DNA of 64,000 nucleotides, from NCBI GenBank assembly GCA_907165135.1, contig OU015569.1, positions 11,966,001 through 12,030,000 of the forward strand. Reading direction: 5' to 3'. The notes beneath the pieces were generated by a model. The model was not told where the DNA came from. It did not search any database and was given only the letters and a program-made list of their open reading frames with translations. This document shows positions 17,292-27,097 of this stretch, one piece after another. The translations under genes were made by a program, and so were the position numbers. Origin of the DNA: Oikopleura dioica (lineage: Eukaryota > Animalia > Chordata). The first letter of the stretch is position 1. Each line of letters opens with the position of its first letter.

Positions 17292-19872
17292 TTACGTAAC
17301 TGTATTATCAGAATCTGAGATAGATGGAGCAAGTTTTTTTCTGAAAATATGAATGAGAAAATGAACAATTGCACAGGCGCCCACGAACCAGCTTAAACAT
17401 GTGGACCAGAAAGTAAATCTGCTCGCTTTATTTTCTTTCTCTTCGTCATCTTCAATCCGGAATGGACCAAGAGTGACGAGGTGTTCTGGATGATGGTCTA
17501 ACGAAGAAGCTCGCCGTTTTCGCCGATCGGAAGAAAAGATTGGGTTGGTGAGATCGCCTAACCGGCAAGTTGATTGACAGGCTGGGTCTTACTGAGGGTT
17601 CTCTTTGTTAGTTCTTCGTCAATTGACCTCAATGCACGTGGTCGGTTCAATAGACCACGGCGACTTTGAGCCGCCGTAATTTCTCTTGTGATAATCCATT
17701 TGACCTGATTTTTGTAATGTGAGCTTAGATGACTAAAACGAACCACTTTGTGAAATTTTGGAAGTTTTCTCAAAAGTGGTGGCATTTTGCAGTGGATTTA
17801 TCTTTCACTCTGCAGCTGAAAATCTTGATAGATGAGTGTTCAAGCTTTCCACCGATATGTATTATAACATTTTGCTTGCCGGAAACGCAAGTTAGAGCTA
17901 GAAGTCTTGAGCGCTCTTTATCACACTCCGACCCCTTGTTTTGAGCGCTTAGTCGCTCGCCCGTGTATTGAGAAGTTAAATTCTTGAGATTGAACCCGTG
18001 GCATTAGCTTTTCGCAGGTCGCAAATAATCACATCGCACTAAAACTAATGTCAGCCTTCGTTTGGAAGTGATGATTGCCTGAATGTAGACGAAATTGGAG
18101 CCGGGAAACCTCAGCGTCTTCGTCTCGAAGCGATCTTCCTTGTTGAGCCGTGGCTGGAGAAAAGTAAAGGAGTCCGCGGGACAGCCGTTGTACATCATTG
18201 GATAGGAAACAGTGTTGCTAGAGAGAAAATAAAGAGAGTTGAAAAGTGAGTCAAGTTACAACTAACTTGGGTTCGACAGAAGGAGCCGACCAGCAACTCT
18301 TCGTGAAAATGTAAAAATAATCCATTTGAGTGATCACTTCTGCACCGAGATAAATGCGTTGGTTGAGGGATTTCGGCAGAGGAAAGGATTGAAATGGGTA
18401 TCTTAAAATAAATTAAAGAATTATCTTCCATGCGTTTGTTTATTTTTACCTGGTTAGATAACTGGAATTATGGTAGACATTCAACCTGAAGAGGAAATCG
18501 CCCTCGTTTTGAATCGCTCCCATTCCTCTTTCAAGGTCACTTATCAGTAATCACTCTTGCTTTTACCAAATTATTCGTTGAAAAAAATTCAACTTGTGAA
18601 TTATTTTTTGTTTTGAACCGTTCCCTGTCACCATAAAGTCCGAGATAACATAAACGGGCATAATTTGCGCGGACACTTGCCAACTCGTCTCATTCACGTA
18701 CTTGTTGTCGATTCGACCGAGGCGATCAATCACGCATCGAAATAAATAAATTTCGCCGTAGTCTCTGTAAACGCCCCCGGTCAATGCTGGTGCTCGGCTA
18801 AATTTCAAGTGCTTTTAATATTTCTTTTTGTCGGAATCTGACCTTAGGTTGTTCTCATAAATGAACTTGGTCGGCTGGTTTTCGTCGTATCTCATTCGCG
18901 TTTCGCACTCAGTAAACCTGAAATTAGAAAACACTGGCTATCTTACTGGAAAGAGTAGAATACTTACTTGTACGAAAAGACGACAAGTGGCACTCATCAT
19001 GTCGAAGCCGAGCAAATAGTCGCCAAGACTCGATTTCGGCATTCTCACAATAAAACGGTCGTTGATCGTGTCGCATTCAACGCTTGGAGTGTATGGCGGT
19101 AAAAGTGTCGCCGTCGTCGATGTTGTCGTGCTCGTCGTCGTTGTTGCTTGTGCCCCGAAGAAGCCTTCGCAGCCTTCCGGGCGTTGACACATGTACCCAT
19201 CTTAACTTTCGAGATGAGCAATGAGCAAATTACGATGAAAACACAGCTTGCTTTTTCTCGCAAAATTCTCTTCTATATAAAATTATAATAGATTATTTTT
19301 AAAGATAAAAACCGGTTTGAACTGGGCGCGTCCGGCAGAACCGGTTAGTCAATAATTTGACCTTTGATCCAAGGTCCTTATTGACCTTGATTCGCGCTAT
19401 GGAACGTACTTACTGTATCCTTAATATCGCAATCTTTGCCGTAAAAGCCGCTCAAACACTGGCACCAATAACTGTTCCATTTATTCTCGCAATTGGCACT
19501 TCCGGACGCAAAGCATGGTTCCAGGATCTCGCACTTATTGAGCCGCGTGTACATGAAGTGATCAGTTTGATCCGGGTCGCCGAACACTTCAAACGCCTCG
19601 GCCCAGTCGCAAGTTTCCTCGTTGCATTCTCGCTCAAGATCCGCAGGCTGCCCTTCTTCCGCTAGGGTGTCGTCTGGTGCGGAAGGGTCCGAATTCATTC
19701 GCCTTAGAATCAAAATCTAGCCAGTTCCTCATTTTCAAGAAAAAAAAGCTTCCAAAGATAACTTACTGTGTCTCATCAAAAATCCACTGGCTTCTTCTTT
19801 GCTTATTTCAGGAAGACTTTGGACAGCCAAAGCACTCAAAGCGAAAATACTCAAAAATAGTCGAAATGCCAT
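17292..19872 (-). CDS. Type I membrane/secreted Gla-EGF-ZP domain protein, multi-exon
   Basis: Signal peptide MAFRLFLSIFALSALAVQS; Gla LAEEGQPADLERECNEETCDWAEAFEVF; EGF (YWCQCLSGFYGKDC); Thr-rich linker; ZP-N (VECDTINDRFIVRM..FTECETRM..YENNL..FRC); ZP-C (FRLNVY, CWSAP, MYNGCP, DRFETKTLRF, VYIQA); RRKRR furin site; EHP-like VTLGPF; TM helix and short tail. Confidence 0.8.
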
Positions 19873-20637: not shown

Positions 20638-20935
20638 AAAGTACCAAAACTTTGGATGCTCCGCCTTTTCGATCCAGTTTAGCTATCAGGGCGTGTGATA
20701 GTGGAAAATGATCGTTGCGAAGAGAGCTAGGTGTGCATCTAGGTTTCATCCCTTCAAAAAATATTTTCAACCCTTTATCACTAGTACCTGATTTTCATAA
20801 AAGGGATGAGATTTTTTTCGAGGGATGAAACCTAAATGCACGCCTAGCTCTCGTCGCGACGATCATTTTCATGTATTGCATGTCATGATAGCTCAAGCGA
20901 CATGAAAATGGTAAGCGTCCAAAGTTTGGTACTTT
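20638..20935. repeat. Degenerate inverted repeat with ~125-bp arms (old MITE)
   Basis: aaagtaccaaaactttgga..gagctaggtgtgcatctaggtttcatccct versus agggatgaaacctaaatgcacgcctagctc..tccaaagtttggtacttt. Confidence 0.65.
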
Positions 20936-21202: not shown

Positions 21203-22459
21203 TCACTGTCGAGGGGCAGAGGCTGACTTGAGCGACCCGACTTGCTTCTCCAGCATATCTTCAATTTCTTTCTCCAATATCCGCTCTTTGAGATTCTCAA
21301 TCTCGATCTTCAACCTTTCGTTTTCATTTAAAAGTTCTGCCAACCAATTGTTCTTTTCCACCAACTCTTTCTTGAGGCTTGCTTGTTCCGCCATGTTGAG
21401 CGATCTAGGTCGGGGCTGCAAATCTGAGCGAGAGGAAGTTCCCCAAGTTGGAATCAAAGTGATTGAATAGGCTTGCGGAAGAAGATACCATCTTTTTGTT
21501 CTCATGTTCTGGAATTGCTCGGACGGTTGGAAATTTCCCTTGCACTCTTTTCGGGGCGAGATACTACACCGCGCTACTAGCCAACATATGGGGGCGCAAC
21601 GGAGCGCGCGCTGATATCAAAAGCATCTGAAAGAGCAAGGAAAACCGACGGCACTGAAAATGTAACGAATGTAACGAATGTAACGAAAACAACAAAAACA
21701 TGTCTTTTTCTCGTTACATTTTCAGTAAAATTCTAGAGATTTTTTGTTTTTCTTATTTCACCCCCTTGAGTTTCCTACCATTTCACCCGCGGAGCGGGCG
21801 TTTTCACTGGATTTATCTCTAAGAGACAAACTAAATCAGATAATTAACCTTTTTCTATACTACTGTGCACTTTTTTTTTATTTATATGCTCTTTTAGGGG
21901 TGTTCTAATGTCATTTGAAATGATACTCCAGAATATCGCTTTTTGGAAAAAGTTTCTAGAATCAGCTGATTAACAACAACATGTCTCTGTCTTCGTTACA
22001 TTTTCAGTAAATTCGTTGTATTCGTTACATCCGTTACATTCGTTACATTTTCAGTGGCGACCAGGAAAACTTCTCGTAGTTTTAAATAAATTAATCAAGC
22101 ACATGATTAAACTAATAATTATATACTAGCTCGCCTCCAAATGAGTGCAAGGGAAATGTCCAATCTCCCGAATTGCTCGTTGACCAAAGGAAAAAACTCG
22201 TTGTTGTCTCCGTAATAAACGAAGTCGTCGTAGCATTTGTGGCAGTCTCTCATCATTTCGGAAGAGGCGTAGAATGCCTGGTCGACAGGAATTCTGATTT
22301 GAGAGCCGGAATGAGAGAAGAGAGTGTTTTGGAGAATGAATTCAGAATTATCGATTCGGTCGAGCACCATTTGGTGGAAGTCAATGGCTCCGTTGGGATA
22401 AAGATAGGCGCCGGTGACGGTCAACGGACGGGAGAAGGAGAGGTTCGGGTGAAGAAGGA
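21203..22459 (-). CDS. Second copy of the terminal (His/Asn) exon of the kinase-peptidase gene, split by nested transposons and extended by a coiled-coil tail; alternative exon or pseudo-exon
   Basis: LLHPNLSFSRPLTVTG..HQMVLDRIDNSEFILQNT..VNEQF | NMRTKRWYLLPQAYSITL parallels 22714-23108 and has the same phase-1 AG acceptor. Confidence 0.6.
21521..22169. mobile_element. MULE-like non-autonomous element with 9-bp TSD, containing a nested element
   Basis: About 49-bp imperfect TIRs ggacggttggaaatttcccttgcactc.. / ..gagtgcaagggaaatgtccaatctccc; TSD GAATTGCTC at 21512-21520 and 22170-22178. Confidence 0.85.
21646..22062. mobile_element. Nested MITE with 8-bp TSD (hAT- or Merlin-like)
   Basis: TIR core cactgaaaatgtaacgaatgtaacg / cgttacattcgttacattttcagtg; TSD AGGAAAAC at 21638-21645 and 22063-22070. 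Confidence 0.8.
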
Positions 22460-22713: not shown

Positions 22714-25700
22714 TTAATAAAAAATGATTGTTTTTTCAGTCATTGAGTTCTCATTGATTCTAGTCAGAGTAATTGAAAAAGCTTGAGGCAGAAGATACCA
22801 TTTTTCTGTTTCCATGTTGAATTCTTCGTTAACTAACTCAAGAAACTCGTTGTTGTCTCCATAATAGACGAAATCTTGGTAGCTGTTGTAACAGTCTTTC
22901 ATCATTTCTTCATCGGCGTAGAATTCTCTTGAAACTGGAATTCTGATTTGAGAGCCGTAATGGTCGATGAGCGTGTTTTGGAGAATGAAATCGGAGTTTT
23001 CGATTCGGTCCAGCACCATTTGGTGGGAAAGTATTTCTCCGTTGCTGTTGAGATAAACGCCGGTGACGGTAAGGGGACGGGAGAAGGAGAAGTTGTGGTG
23101 GAGGAGCACTGAATTTTTAATTTTATTTGATTTTTAGTTTTGAATTTCGTTACCTTGCTCGAAATCAAAATTGGAAGGTATCGAGAAGTGGTTCCTTGAG
23201 TTGTCTCTGATAATTTGCCATCCACTATCATTCAAATAAGTCCTTAAGGTGGTAGAAACAGCTTTTTTGAAAAAAGCCGATTTTTGAACAGCGCCCGAGC
23301 TCAGCCAATCTTAGATTTTTGAATTCTCTCTTCGATTTTAGTTAGATTTATCTTAGATCTAAGAACATCTGTTTTTAAAATTAATTTTTGTTTACTCAGT
23401 TTATCGGTAGAAAGCGAAACATAAACCCATCTCGTCGAAAATCCCGATTTTCGCCCATTTTCAAGCACGATTATCTCGAGACTTGTGATTAACCGAGAAT
23501 TTCTTATTTCATAATAAGATACTTGAACCCTTTTTCTAGGAGCATCTATGATGTAAATTCCGTTATCATAAAAAATGATAGTGTTGGGAGTTCGATTGCA
23601 ACTTCTGTATCAAATTTTCGAAATTTTGAATTTGAAACAGATTTTTTTCGTGATACCCTTAAGTAATCTTCCTACCTAAGTTATTAACGATGATAATGTG
23701 ATCCAAACAAATCTATCTAATCGGGGTTCAACCGTTTATTTCACGATTTTAAGCCTCGATAAAATTCGAAAATTTAAAATTTTTCCCAAAACTACAACTT
23801 TAAAGACAATTTAAAGGACATTCCAACATAGTGAGGGGGTAACTTTTTATAGCGTTTTTATTCTTTGTGTCCTAGGCTTTCAGAATCTTAGAAAAAATCT
23901 TTAGTATTCCATCTTTGGCAAAAGCTGTTTCTACCCCCTTAACTTCAATCTTCTGAGAAGCATTGCAATTTCGTTGGTTTGAAATTTTTGTTCTTCGAAT
24001 TTCGGATTGAGATTGAAGCCAGCCAAACTCCGCGGATAAATAACCATTGTCAAATTTGTGAAGATTTTTTCAATAGTATAATTATCTTTCATTTTAGATT
24101 CATCAATGTCCAAATCATTTTTGAGTGCCCATCTCAAAAGCACCAAAACTGTAATAGGGACACAGAGATTGCTTTCTTTTTGGTTTAAAACATTCTTCGT
24201 CACGTTTTTGAAGTCGAAATTGATTTGTTTCGTCAGTTTTTGTTTCAGACTGGCCATTGCAGCTGATTTCGTCAAATTCGGATCGTCAAGGCAAAAATCA
24301 GAAGACGCGTTTTTTAAAGAAATGATTTTTGTCAAGTTTTGGATTTTTGAGATTGATGGTCTTAATTTGTTTGAGAGCCAGCCAGCATTGCAAGTCTTAG
24401 AAAGATTATTTTCTTTTTTATGAAAAGTAAAGACTTACCTCAAGTTCTTTTTTGATGATTTCTCTTTCTTTTTCTTCGATTGGTTTGAATAAAAGAGTCC
24501 AGGCCGTCTTCCACTCGCAAAGAATAAAAATATGAGGAAGAGAGCAATGATCTGCGGGGTTTCCGCCTATCTGCGAGCCAAAAGAAAATGCAGGAGACCC
24601 AGCATCTACGAAAAAAAGAGATAAAACACGAGCATTTTTCAACAAGCTCAAAACTTACATAAACAGTAGCTATTTCTAAATCTGCTTCCTCTCCTCGCGT
24701 AACCCATCTCCTGATAACTCTCTCGTCCAGTCGTTTCGTAAATAATGCTGAAATCGATCCATTTGGCTTCTCCATTTTTCAGAAGGACATTTTCCGGCTT
24801 CTCATCGAAATGAACAATTCCAATTTTCCGCAAATACTCTCTTCCCTCTTGGACGCCAATCGCAATTTTCTTCCTTTCGTCCAAATTCAACTGATTTTTC
24901 TTCAATTTGCTTCTCAAATCCGCGTCGCATTTCTCCATAATCGTAATCCATCCAAGACAGTCTTCTTTCTCCAAGTCGCTACTCAAAAAGACTTCGATGT
25001 TGCAGAAATTCTTTATCACGTTTTTGTGAAAAGGAATCACTCGGGCGTCGTCATTTTTGTCGTTTTGGGCAGTTCCGTATTCTTAAAAATAATAAAAAAA
25101 AAACTTTAAGAAATAAAAATTACCTTTCGAAAGATGAATTTTAAACTCCAATTCTTCATTCTCCGCAAATAACGCGGGATCAAAAGCCTGAACCCGAACA
25201 GCAAATTCCAATTCTCCGAATTTTTCTTCCAAAACAAGCGCTTCTCCTCCAATTGAAATCTCCTGAAAATATTTATCGAGAATCCACTCTCCGGTTTCTT
25301 CTTTTAATTCTGAACGTTTAATTTTTCGTCCTTCGAAGCCTGGATTTTTGTCGAGAATAATTTTTTGAAATGAAGTTACTCTCCATTCTTCCTGAACTTT
25401 GTTTCCCCAAAAGTGAGTTCCAGACAGTTTTCCTTTTCCATCTTCGAAAATGACCTCCTCCCATGCAGCACAAAAATCATCTTCAAACTGCATTCTGTCC
25501 AGCGACAAAATCAACCTGTCCAAATCATCTCGGCTCGTTTTTCTCTTCAATTTCTTTTGAAACTCTTCCAGCCATTTTTCAACAACTTCTCTTGTCAGTT
25601 CTTTTGGATGCGACGGAACTTGCAACATTTTTACAGATTCATGGGACTCATCAGATTTTTGAGAATTTTCATTCTCTGTTTCGGGTTTAGACTCATACCC

Positions 25701-25883
25701 TGGTGGTGGAGCAAAGATGACCGATCTGAAATCAACAACAACCGGTCTTTCATTGAAACTTGTAGTCGCCTGCCCCAGATCGCTTGTGATTGGATCAAGA
25801 TCAATCGGAATTCGTTTGCCTTCTTCGGCCTCGACCGAAGATCTCTTTCTTTTTCTCTTGTTAAATTCGATTACAGGATCCAT
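22714..25883 (-). CDS. Divergent protein kinase (possible pseudokinase) fused to a C-terminal papain-fold cysteine peptidase-like domain
   Basis: Kinase: SIGGEALV, FAVRV, HKNVI, ITIMEKCD, IVHFDEKPENVLL, WIDFS, AGSPAF. Peptidase: VLNQKESNLCVP, RPLTV, HQMVL, FILQNT. Confidence 0.75.
23248..23938. mobile_element. TTAA-targeting non-autonomous DNA transposon (GG..CC ends, Kolobok-like) inserted in an exon
   Basis: TIR ggtggtagaaacagctttt / aaaagctgtttctaccccc; TTAA at 23244-23247 and 23939-23942. Removing it restores LKLRTYLNDSGW. Confidence 0.88.
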
Positions 25884-26074: not shown

Positions 26075-27097
26075 ATTTTTCTTGTTTTTTTATTCGACGT
26101 TTGAATCGTTTGAATACTATTTATGCACCTTGCACAGAAGAATGATTCTTTTTTGGACAACAGTAAAATGGAGAATGCAGCAAATCTTGAACATGTGATC
26201 TTTTGTGTTGTTTAGGCAAGCATTTCTTTCAACAATGGGGGCTAAAATATATCCAGTTAATTTCAGAAAAAGCCATTTTCAAGCTCGGCCAATCAAAAGG
26301 CGCGAAATCAAAAAGGCAAAGTGGTGGCGCTCTTTTGCCTCGCCGCTAGATAGCGCCTGTATCAAAAATTAGATCTGCTAATTATTTGTCAATAATTCTT
26401 TGCTTACCAAGACATCGCTCGCCAACTGGTCATGAAATGCTTTTCCGAGTGGCAGTGTCATAAACGACAAGAAGCGGAGACTCAATTGCAGAGAAATTAT
26501 GTCCTGAAATAATTCATAAAGTCCCATTGAACGATTTTCCTTTACCGAGAATCTGTTCTTTCCGAAATCGGAAAGTCTCTCGATGAAAAGCTAGAAAAAT
26601 TTTTGACGGGAAATTTCGCTGCTTTGCCTACCTCTTTGAGGCCGATATCGAGGAGGATGTCAAAAGTGTATTCCATTTGTGAGTCGTAATTTAGAAACGC
26701 TCGTTTTTGCAAGTCGAAATACGTCGCCGCTTAAAGAAGATATTATCGAAGGCTCAGTTTTTCAATTTCTTTGCTGGGCTGAGCTAAGGTCGAAACTGAG
26801 CTCAGCTGAGCCAGCTTTATCCTGCAAATTGTGGAGCTCCTCTGGCTGAGATGAATACGAGCTGAGCTGGGCTTAACTGAGCCTATTCTGAAAAAAGGCT
26901 CAGCTGAGCTTAGGCAACATCTTTTAGCGATGAGCTGAGCTAATCTTTTTTTAGCAAATCGTTGAGCTAAGCTCATCATCTTAGCTCAGAAAATTTGCGA
27001 CACAAACAAAAGCCAAAAATTCTAAAAGAAAAAATTCACCTGCAAAATGACGATTTCTCGAATTCCGGCTCTGATGAGCTCGACCTGGTCGTTTTGC
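26075..27097 (-). pseudogene. Decayed partial duplicate of the NR1I receptor 3' half (LBD exons and 3' UTR)
   Basis: High similarity to ~32570-33780; lacks the segment equivalent to ~33050-33230 and has no DNA-binding domain. Confidence 0.8.

Follow-up and report, generated by a model that had tools for sequence, protein, structure and literature searches.

Organisation of the locus

The DNA examined here is a 64,000-nucleotide stretch of Oikopleura dioica (G000:C2:11,966,001-12,030,000; hereafter the window, to which positions refer) from the 64.28-Mb, 19-contig assembly that was searched; contig C2 is, we presume, probably an X-specific region. On the minus strand of the window lies a gene for a protein in which an N-terminal domain and a divergent kinase precede a papain-fold cysteine peptidase. 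The gene belongs to a family of about 120 copies in this genome, and in this copy, which is probably non-functional, the peptidase exon is interrupted by a transposon.

Six pieces make up the gene (Table 1). Joined, they give a model of 761 amino acids (aa) with no stop and with GT-AG at every junction; four introns measure 42-53 nt and one 701 nt, and the catalytic residues are numbered Gln522, Cys528, His659 and Asn675. Most paralogues start not at 25883 but at a Met equivalent to 25628, 122-126 residues before the Gly loop. The 85-aa extension is restricted to the 25883 copy and its nearest paralogues, and a KRKRKR run is found in this copy alone. The ~120-aa N-terminal domain of exon 1 has no assigned fold. 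Databases were searched with individual exons, while the joined model was compared locally with other sequences; the predicted structures discussed below are those of the database relatives P0005 and P0072, not of this locus.

Table 1. Features of the kinase-peptidase gene and its surroundings, in window positions
Feature	Position	Strand	Content
Exon 1	25124..25883	-	85-aa low-complexity extension, ~120-aa N-terminal domain, kinase N-lobe
Exon 2	24659..25081	-	Kinase core; H-F-D-E-K-P-E-N catalytic loop from 24812, DFS from 24755
Exon 3	24439..24605	-	P+1 loop, hypervariable stretch (residues 403-415), kinase C-lobe
Exon 4, 5' part	23944..24395	-	Kinase end, conserved linker from 24287, helical subdomain
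Non-autonomous DNA transposon, 691 bp	23248-23938 (between TTAA copies, 23244..23942)		19-bp terminal inverted repeats
Exon 4, 3' part	23154..23242	-	Joined to 5' part without a break in paralogues
Last exon	22714..23108	-	Beta-sheet subdomain, RPLTV (23079), His 23025-23023, Asn 22977-22975, stop
Second partial last exon	21203..22459	-	~71% identical protein, His and Asn kept, own in-phase AG acceptor

The kinase domain

Exon 2, which also carries a long basic activation segment, matches Pfam Pkinase (E=3.6e-9, 36.8 bits, cut-off 31.7), and the domain has the eukaryotic protein kinase fold. Its N-lobe landmarks are GGEA at 25250 and an Arg at the beta-3 Lys position (25196-25194). The initial annotation had called the kinase aberrant on account of this Arg, HFD and DFS. 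All three are present, but DFS is not typical: DFG is the norm for the family, and DFS occurs in only 6 of 25 near paralogues. The beta-3 Arg, by contrast with the Lys of a sister clade described below, is found in 22/22 own-genome paralogues and 41/41 database proteins. The catalytic-loop Asp, Lys and Asn are each kept in 25/25 near paralogues and the metal-binding Asp of DFG in 24/25. In its invariant beta-3 Arg the O. dioica domain thus departs from a catalytically canonical kinase, while the other catalytic residues conform.

A papain-like fold behind the kinase

The papain-like geometry first noted in the C-terminal part is present: the oxyanion Gln (24182-24180) lies six residues before the catalytic Cys (24164-24162), both in the 5' part of exon 4, and His lies 16 residues before Asn in the last exon, where RPLTV is also found. 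The proposed Cys-His distance of about 133 residues comes to 131 or 134 here, depending on the donor chosen, but it requires 23943-23243, a transposon, to be spliced out. Moreover, this distance ranges from 129 to 145 among spliced relatives (152 in one), so its agreement with the 134 of papain carries little weight; the His-Asn spacing is 16 in 34 of 42. Gln, Cys, His and Asn are kept in 28/28, 26/28, 28/29 and 28/29 own-genome paralogues, respectively, and in about 95% of database relatives. The predicted catalytic set of this locus is therefore not a chance match.

Models of relatives support a papain-like, clan CA fold with a conserved predicted catalytic set. In the P0005 model, the Define Secondary Structure of Proteins (DSSP) assignment places C77 at a helix N-terminus, H207 on a strand and N223 after the next strand. 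The closest structural matches are C1A and C39 peptidases with the Cys in register; the neighbours also include the deconjugases UfSP, ATG4 and ZUFSP, phytochelatin synthase and contact-dependent inhibition (CDI) toxins. Foldseek returned nothing at E<=0.001 against the Protein Data Bank (PDB) or viral models, and neither the peptidase exon nor profiles gave a meaningful match when searched against PDB sequences. The domain is a clan CA family that neither Pfam nor PDB sequence search recognises.

Membership of three known families was considered and rejected. C1A enzymes carry a signal peptide and an I29 prodomain, both absent here, NLCV and QNT replace GSCW and NSW, and Peptidase_C1 is matched by 0/68 members. 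For C1B (bleomycin hydrolase), the Peptidase_C1_2 match to the 5' part of exon 4 is partial and below cut-off (E=0.0056, 16 bits against 22, positions 36-96 of 438), with weak matches in 4/68 members. The likeness to C39 is structural alone, with no Pfam C39 or C39_2 match and no ABC-transporter fusion.

As initially proposed, no hydrophobic N-terminus marks a signal peptide. A propeptide had likewise been thought lacking; there is indeed no I29 match, but the conserved linker of ~35 residues directly before Gln and Cys could act as one. An N-L/V-T-K/M-like motif is repeated in this linker region (24183-24340 and 24056), where it might provide phospho-acceptor or self-cleavage sites.

The same triad could instead serve a deamidase, acyltransferase or transglutaminase, since such enzymes occur among papain-fold families (PMC10318531) and the structural neighbours named above include phytochelatin synthase and CDI toxins. 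This reading is improbable: C1A and C39 peptidases give the best structural matches, and the oxyanion Gln, mostly missing from the deamidase/transglutaminase cluster of the fold (PMC10318531), is retained here.

A transposon in the peptidase exon

The exon that is split in this copy is uninterrupted in paralogues. Kolobok-like elements duplicate a TTAA target and have terminal inverted repeats with purine-purine ... pyrimidine-pyrimidine ends. The 691-bp insert, which has no coding capacity, shows the ends and target site of a putative Kolobok-like non-autonomous transposon: at least 10 full-length copies (82-94% identical) occur in the genome, with GG...CC ends and TTAA on both sides in 9/10. 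About 30 further partial matches belong to a related subfamily. Where a G stands on both sides of the TTAA site, the insert acquires GT...AG ends, as seen in 3/10 copies.

Reading through the transposon meets an in-frame stop at 23933-23931, upstream of the His codon. The product of this copy would then end before His, and the copy is probably non-functional. The alternative is that splicing takes out the transposon as a preformed GT-AG intron, from donor 23943 or 23934 to acceptor 23243, giving a functional protein two residues shorter or one longer. Either donor preserves the frame, the copy has no further stop or frameshift and few changes at conserved sites, and the O. dioica spliceosome has been described as permissive (PMC4122922). 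Scored against 47 donors and 50 acceptors from the family's own introns, however, the acceptor has no pyrimidine tract and reaches -4.8 (family minimum 0.9), the donors reach 0.0 and 1.4 (family median 9.1), and stronger cryptic sites lie within the element. A Phe-to-Ser change adjoining the catalytic His is also private to this copy, the Phe being present in 29/29 paralogues. No raw RNA read at >=99% identity and no splice joint was found for the locus, although the runs come from a diverged population in which even the neighbouring gene is matched in short ~85% pieces, so that silence cannot be shown. In these runs, from unchallenged samples, reads did match short conserved stretches of family members. 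On balance a functional, spliced copy is doubtful. The gene would have been an ordinary family member until the TTAA transposon entered its peptidase exon, and it is a poor specimen of the family.

The second, partial last exon is itself split by a 649-bp element with long terminal inverted repeats (21521-22169) between 9-bp direct repeats, which we take to be Mutator-like and which contains an additional 48-nt inverted repeat (21649-22059). More small elements probably account for a 115-nt inverted-repeat pair (20647-20927) and a cluster of short palindromic CTCAGC/CTGAG repeats upstream of the gene (26740-26960). An open frame in which an EGF-like domain comes after a Gla-like motif (19378-19713, minus strand) is part of a neighbouring gene.

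An expanded family of fused genes

Searches with the Cys, His, kinase and first exons gave 129, 123, 139 and 133 genome matches, respectively, which are spread over C1, C2, C4, C5 and two small contigs and for the most part share order and spacing. None of the ~500 matches falls on C3, possibly a Y-specific region. Copies nearest to this one are concentrated at C2:11.6-12.7 Mb and C1:15.4-16.6 Mb. All named relatives are from O. dioica.

The proposed fusion of kinase and peptidase is borne out at the level of the family, though an intact fusion from this locus is not supported, as the transposon splits the peptidase. At two C4 loci a single open frame, of 655 and 669 codons respectively, runs from the N-terminal domain through the kinase into the Cys half; elsewhere one frame unites the Cys half with the His half (L005, 313 codons), a metagenomic gene joins kinase and Cys half in a single 471-codon frame, and many NCBI gene models are fused proteins of ~700 aa. 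Because of these single frames and models, the fusion is solid even without cDNA.

In a tree, a single clade (98/95) separate from the NCBI proteins takes in 15 of the 16 own-genome rows, which points to separate, lineage-specific bursts. Many copies are damaged, introns are small and shared, and tandem clusters are present; the count of intact exons (19/29) is crude, as it overlooked the insertion in this copy and wrongly flags the hypervariable exon 3. Lineage-specific clades, high copy number, spread over four large contigs and frequent broken copies would also be expected of selfish or conflict elements, either carried by a mobile element or acting as a toxin-like drive system rather than in host defence. 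The shared small introns and tandem clusters speak against such an origin, which we regard as quite improbable, and no relatives were found in viral or prokaryotic contigs. Viral rows of an Atlas feature search are leads alone, and no horizontal transfer is claimed.

On the plus strand of G000:C4:807587-808951, one 596-codon open frame takes in a match to the His exon and, downstream of it, one to the kinase exon, which may reflect a tandem fusion of two family units. Some matches come in pairs of equal score (G000:C16 and C1:5.97 Mb; C4:3.23 and 3.29 Mb; C5:4.61 and 4.65 Mb), representing recent segmental duplicates or redundant haplotype sequence. P0212 and P0108, which join family pieces to a DnaJ-like stretch and a fucosyltransferase, respectively, are probably mis-joined predictions. 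Members of the P0079 type have a hydrophobic N-terminus.

A sister clade in marine metagenomes

A profile search reached P0256, whose relatives align to the O. dioica peptidase with a probability of 97.9%. They form a sister clade from marine metagenomes, on contigs that show GT-AG introns and carry animal-like genes nearby (a neuronal calcium sensor, a PLA2-like gene), with at least 19 loci in one sample; the host is probably another larvacean. Kinase precedes peptidase as in O. dioica, and the motifs comprise the beta-3 Lys, HLDxKxxN, DFG, GTPGFxSPE and papain-like HAV and IKNS. The N-terminal region of ~330 aa bears no similarity to the O. dioica N-terminus, and its ankyrin-like appearance was not backed by Pfam. 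Since the order is the same but the N-termini are dissimilar, it is the pair of kinase and peptidase that is conserved, with an exchangeable N-terminus.

In one locus of this clade (L100:242-4296), hydrophobic frames with multiple membrane spans lie between the Gly-loop piece and the remaining kinase, representing a nested gene or an insertion. Hydrophobic frames upstream of the N-terminal domain in two other loci (L085:1114-1710, L088:1035-1899) are possible exons of the same gene, and L085:6142-6876 is an open frame of short-period Gly/Asp/Phe-rich repeats.

Selection and proposed function

Pairwise dN/dS is 0.17-0.31 in every region of the gene, and the core is under purifying selection, with the tightest constraint on the linker and Cys helix (pN/pS 0.07-0.27). 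Change is faster than the mean synonymous rate at residues 405-419 and 540-554, and sites that vary among own-genome copies tend to vary among the NCBI proteins as well (Spearman 0.54). The 20 kinase sites that vary most were picked on the NCBI set and measured in own-genome copies, where dN/dS was 2.0 (1.2-3.1) in the eight youngest copies and 1.07 and 1.22 in two older clusters. These values, which come from pairwise comparisons and not a formal site test, are suggestive of fast evolution at a subset of kinase sites. Several of the variable sites (331, 335, 338, 343, 368, 370) border the catalytic loop and activation segment and, from general kinase anatomy, would form one face.

Copy number, species-specific bursts and dN/dS above 1 at variable kinase sites lend indirect support to a putative role as defence sensor-effector. 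The reading that we favour, at about even odds, is that family members are soluble, intracellular proteins of three parts that act as immune-like gated proteases. The conserved linker running into the catalytic Cys would hold the peptidase off; in the AlphaFold2 model of P0072 it is not placed (pLDDT <50 at 412-453). The kinase domain, with nucleotide bound, would act chiefly as a switch and as a surface for recognition. Its state would change when a ligand that is foreign or linked to damage engages its variable face or the N-terminal domain; the linker would then leave the active site, and the released peptidase would cut itself or a host target, leading to defence or cell death. The family itself would turn over by birth and death.

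A core under purifying selection, RNA reads from unchallenged samples that match conserved stretches of relatives, and the deconjugases among the structural neighbours would suit a non-immune signalling or protein-processing module, such as a kinase-regulated deconjugase or a processing protease in development, the germ line or house renewal; drift in a rearranging genome would then account for the expansion. Yet independent lineage bursts with many damaged copies, and variable sites common to lineages with dN/dS of ~2, are atypical of housekeeping genes and make this explanation unlikely. The gated immune-like protease may, more tentatively, be extended to larvaceans at large, which would use a large, fast-evolving family of proteins, each with sensor, kinase and protease in a single chain, as intracellular immune receptors: a new clan CA family gated in cis by the kinase and with swappable N-termini, in which O. 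dioica would have turned the kinase into an Arg-type pseudokinase serving as recognition surface.

Comparison with known systems

Compared with C1A peptidases (Der p 1, calotropain, cathepsin B, xylellain), the family shares 7-10% identity, lacks GSCW, NSW, signal peptide, I29 prodomain and a Pfam match at cut-off, and places its peptidase behind a kinase. Unlike C39 and C39-like proteins (PCAT1, ComA), it lacks an ABC transporter, has extra helical and C-terminal elements and is an animal gene with introns.

The EDR1 domain precedes a Raf-like kinase in EDR1/CTR1-type proteins. This plant type is the sole fusion of a papain-like fold with a kinase named in a 2023 classification, which mentions no tunicate family (PMC10318531). 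The EDR1 domain is grouped with transglutaminase-like families, and no Pfam EDR1 match was found in the O. dioica family. Our literature search found no paper describing the family or its fusion of a peptidase behind a kinase. New here are the transposon state of this copy, the invariant Arg against the Lys of a sister clade with a different N-terminus, and the held-out selection test.

By analogy only, the layout of sensor, (pseudo)kinase and C-terminal enzyme recalls RNase L and IRE1; in RNase L, the effector is gated by a kinase that is inactive but binds ATP (PMC4718504). The effector here is a papain-fold cysteine peptidase instead of a KEN RNase, and no ankyrin match is found. MLKL and plant tandem-kinase or kinase-fusion resistance proteins similarly rely in defence on a kinase or pseudokinase, either as a switch or to sense the ligand directly (PMC4718504; bioRxiv 10.1101/2024.04.30.591956), the part proposed for the kinase here, but the present family has a single kinase and no four-helix killer domain, and no sequence relationship is shown.

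The significance of these observations rests on the family and not on this locus. About 120 copies in the 64-Mb genome of a gene-losing chordate constitute a large unstudied repertoire, and the change from kinase to pseudokinase can be approached through a natural pair, the Arg-type clade of O. dioica and its Lys-type sister. If the kinase gates the protease in defence, the family would be an animal counterpart of RNase L, MLKL and plant kinase-fusion receptors and would suggest, in a form open to testing, how pathogens are detected in O. dioica.
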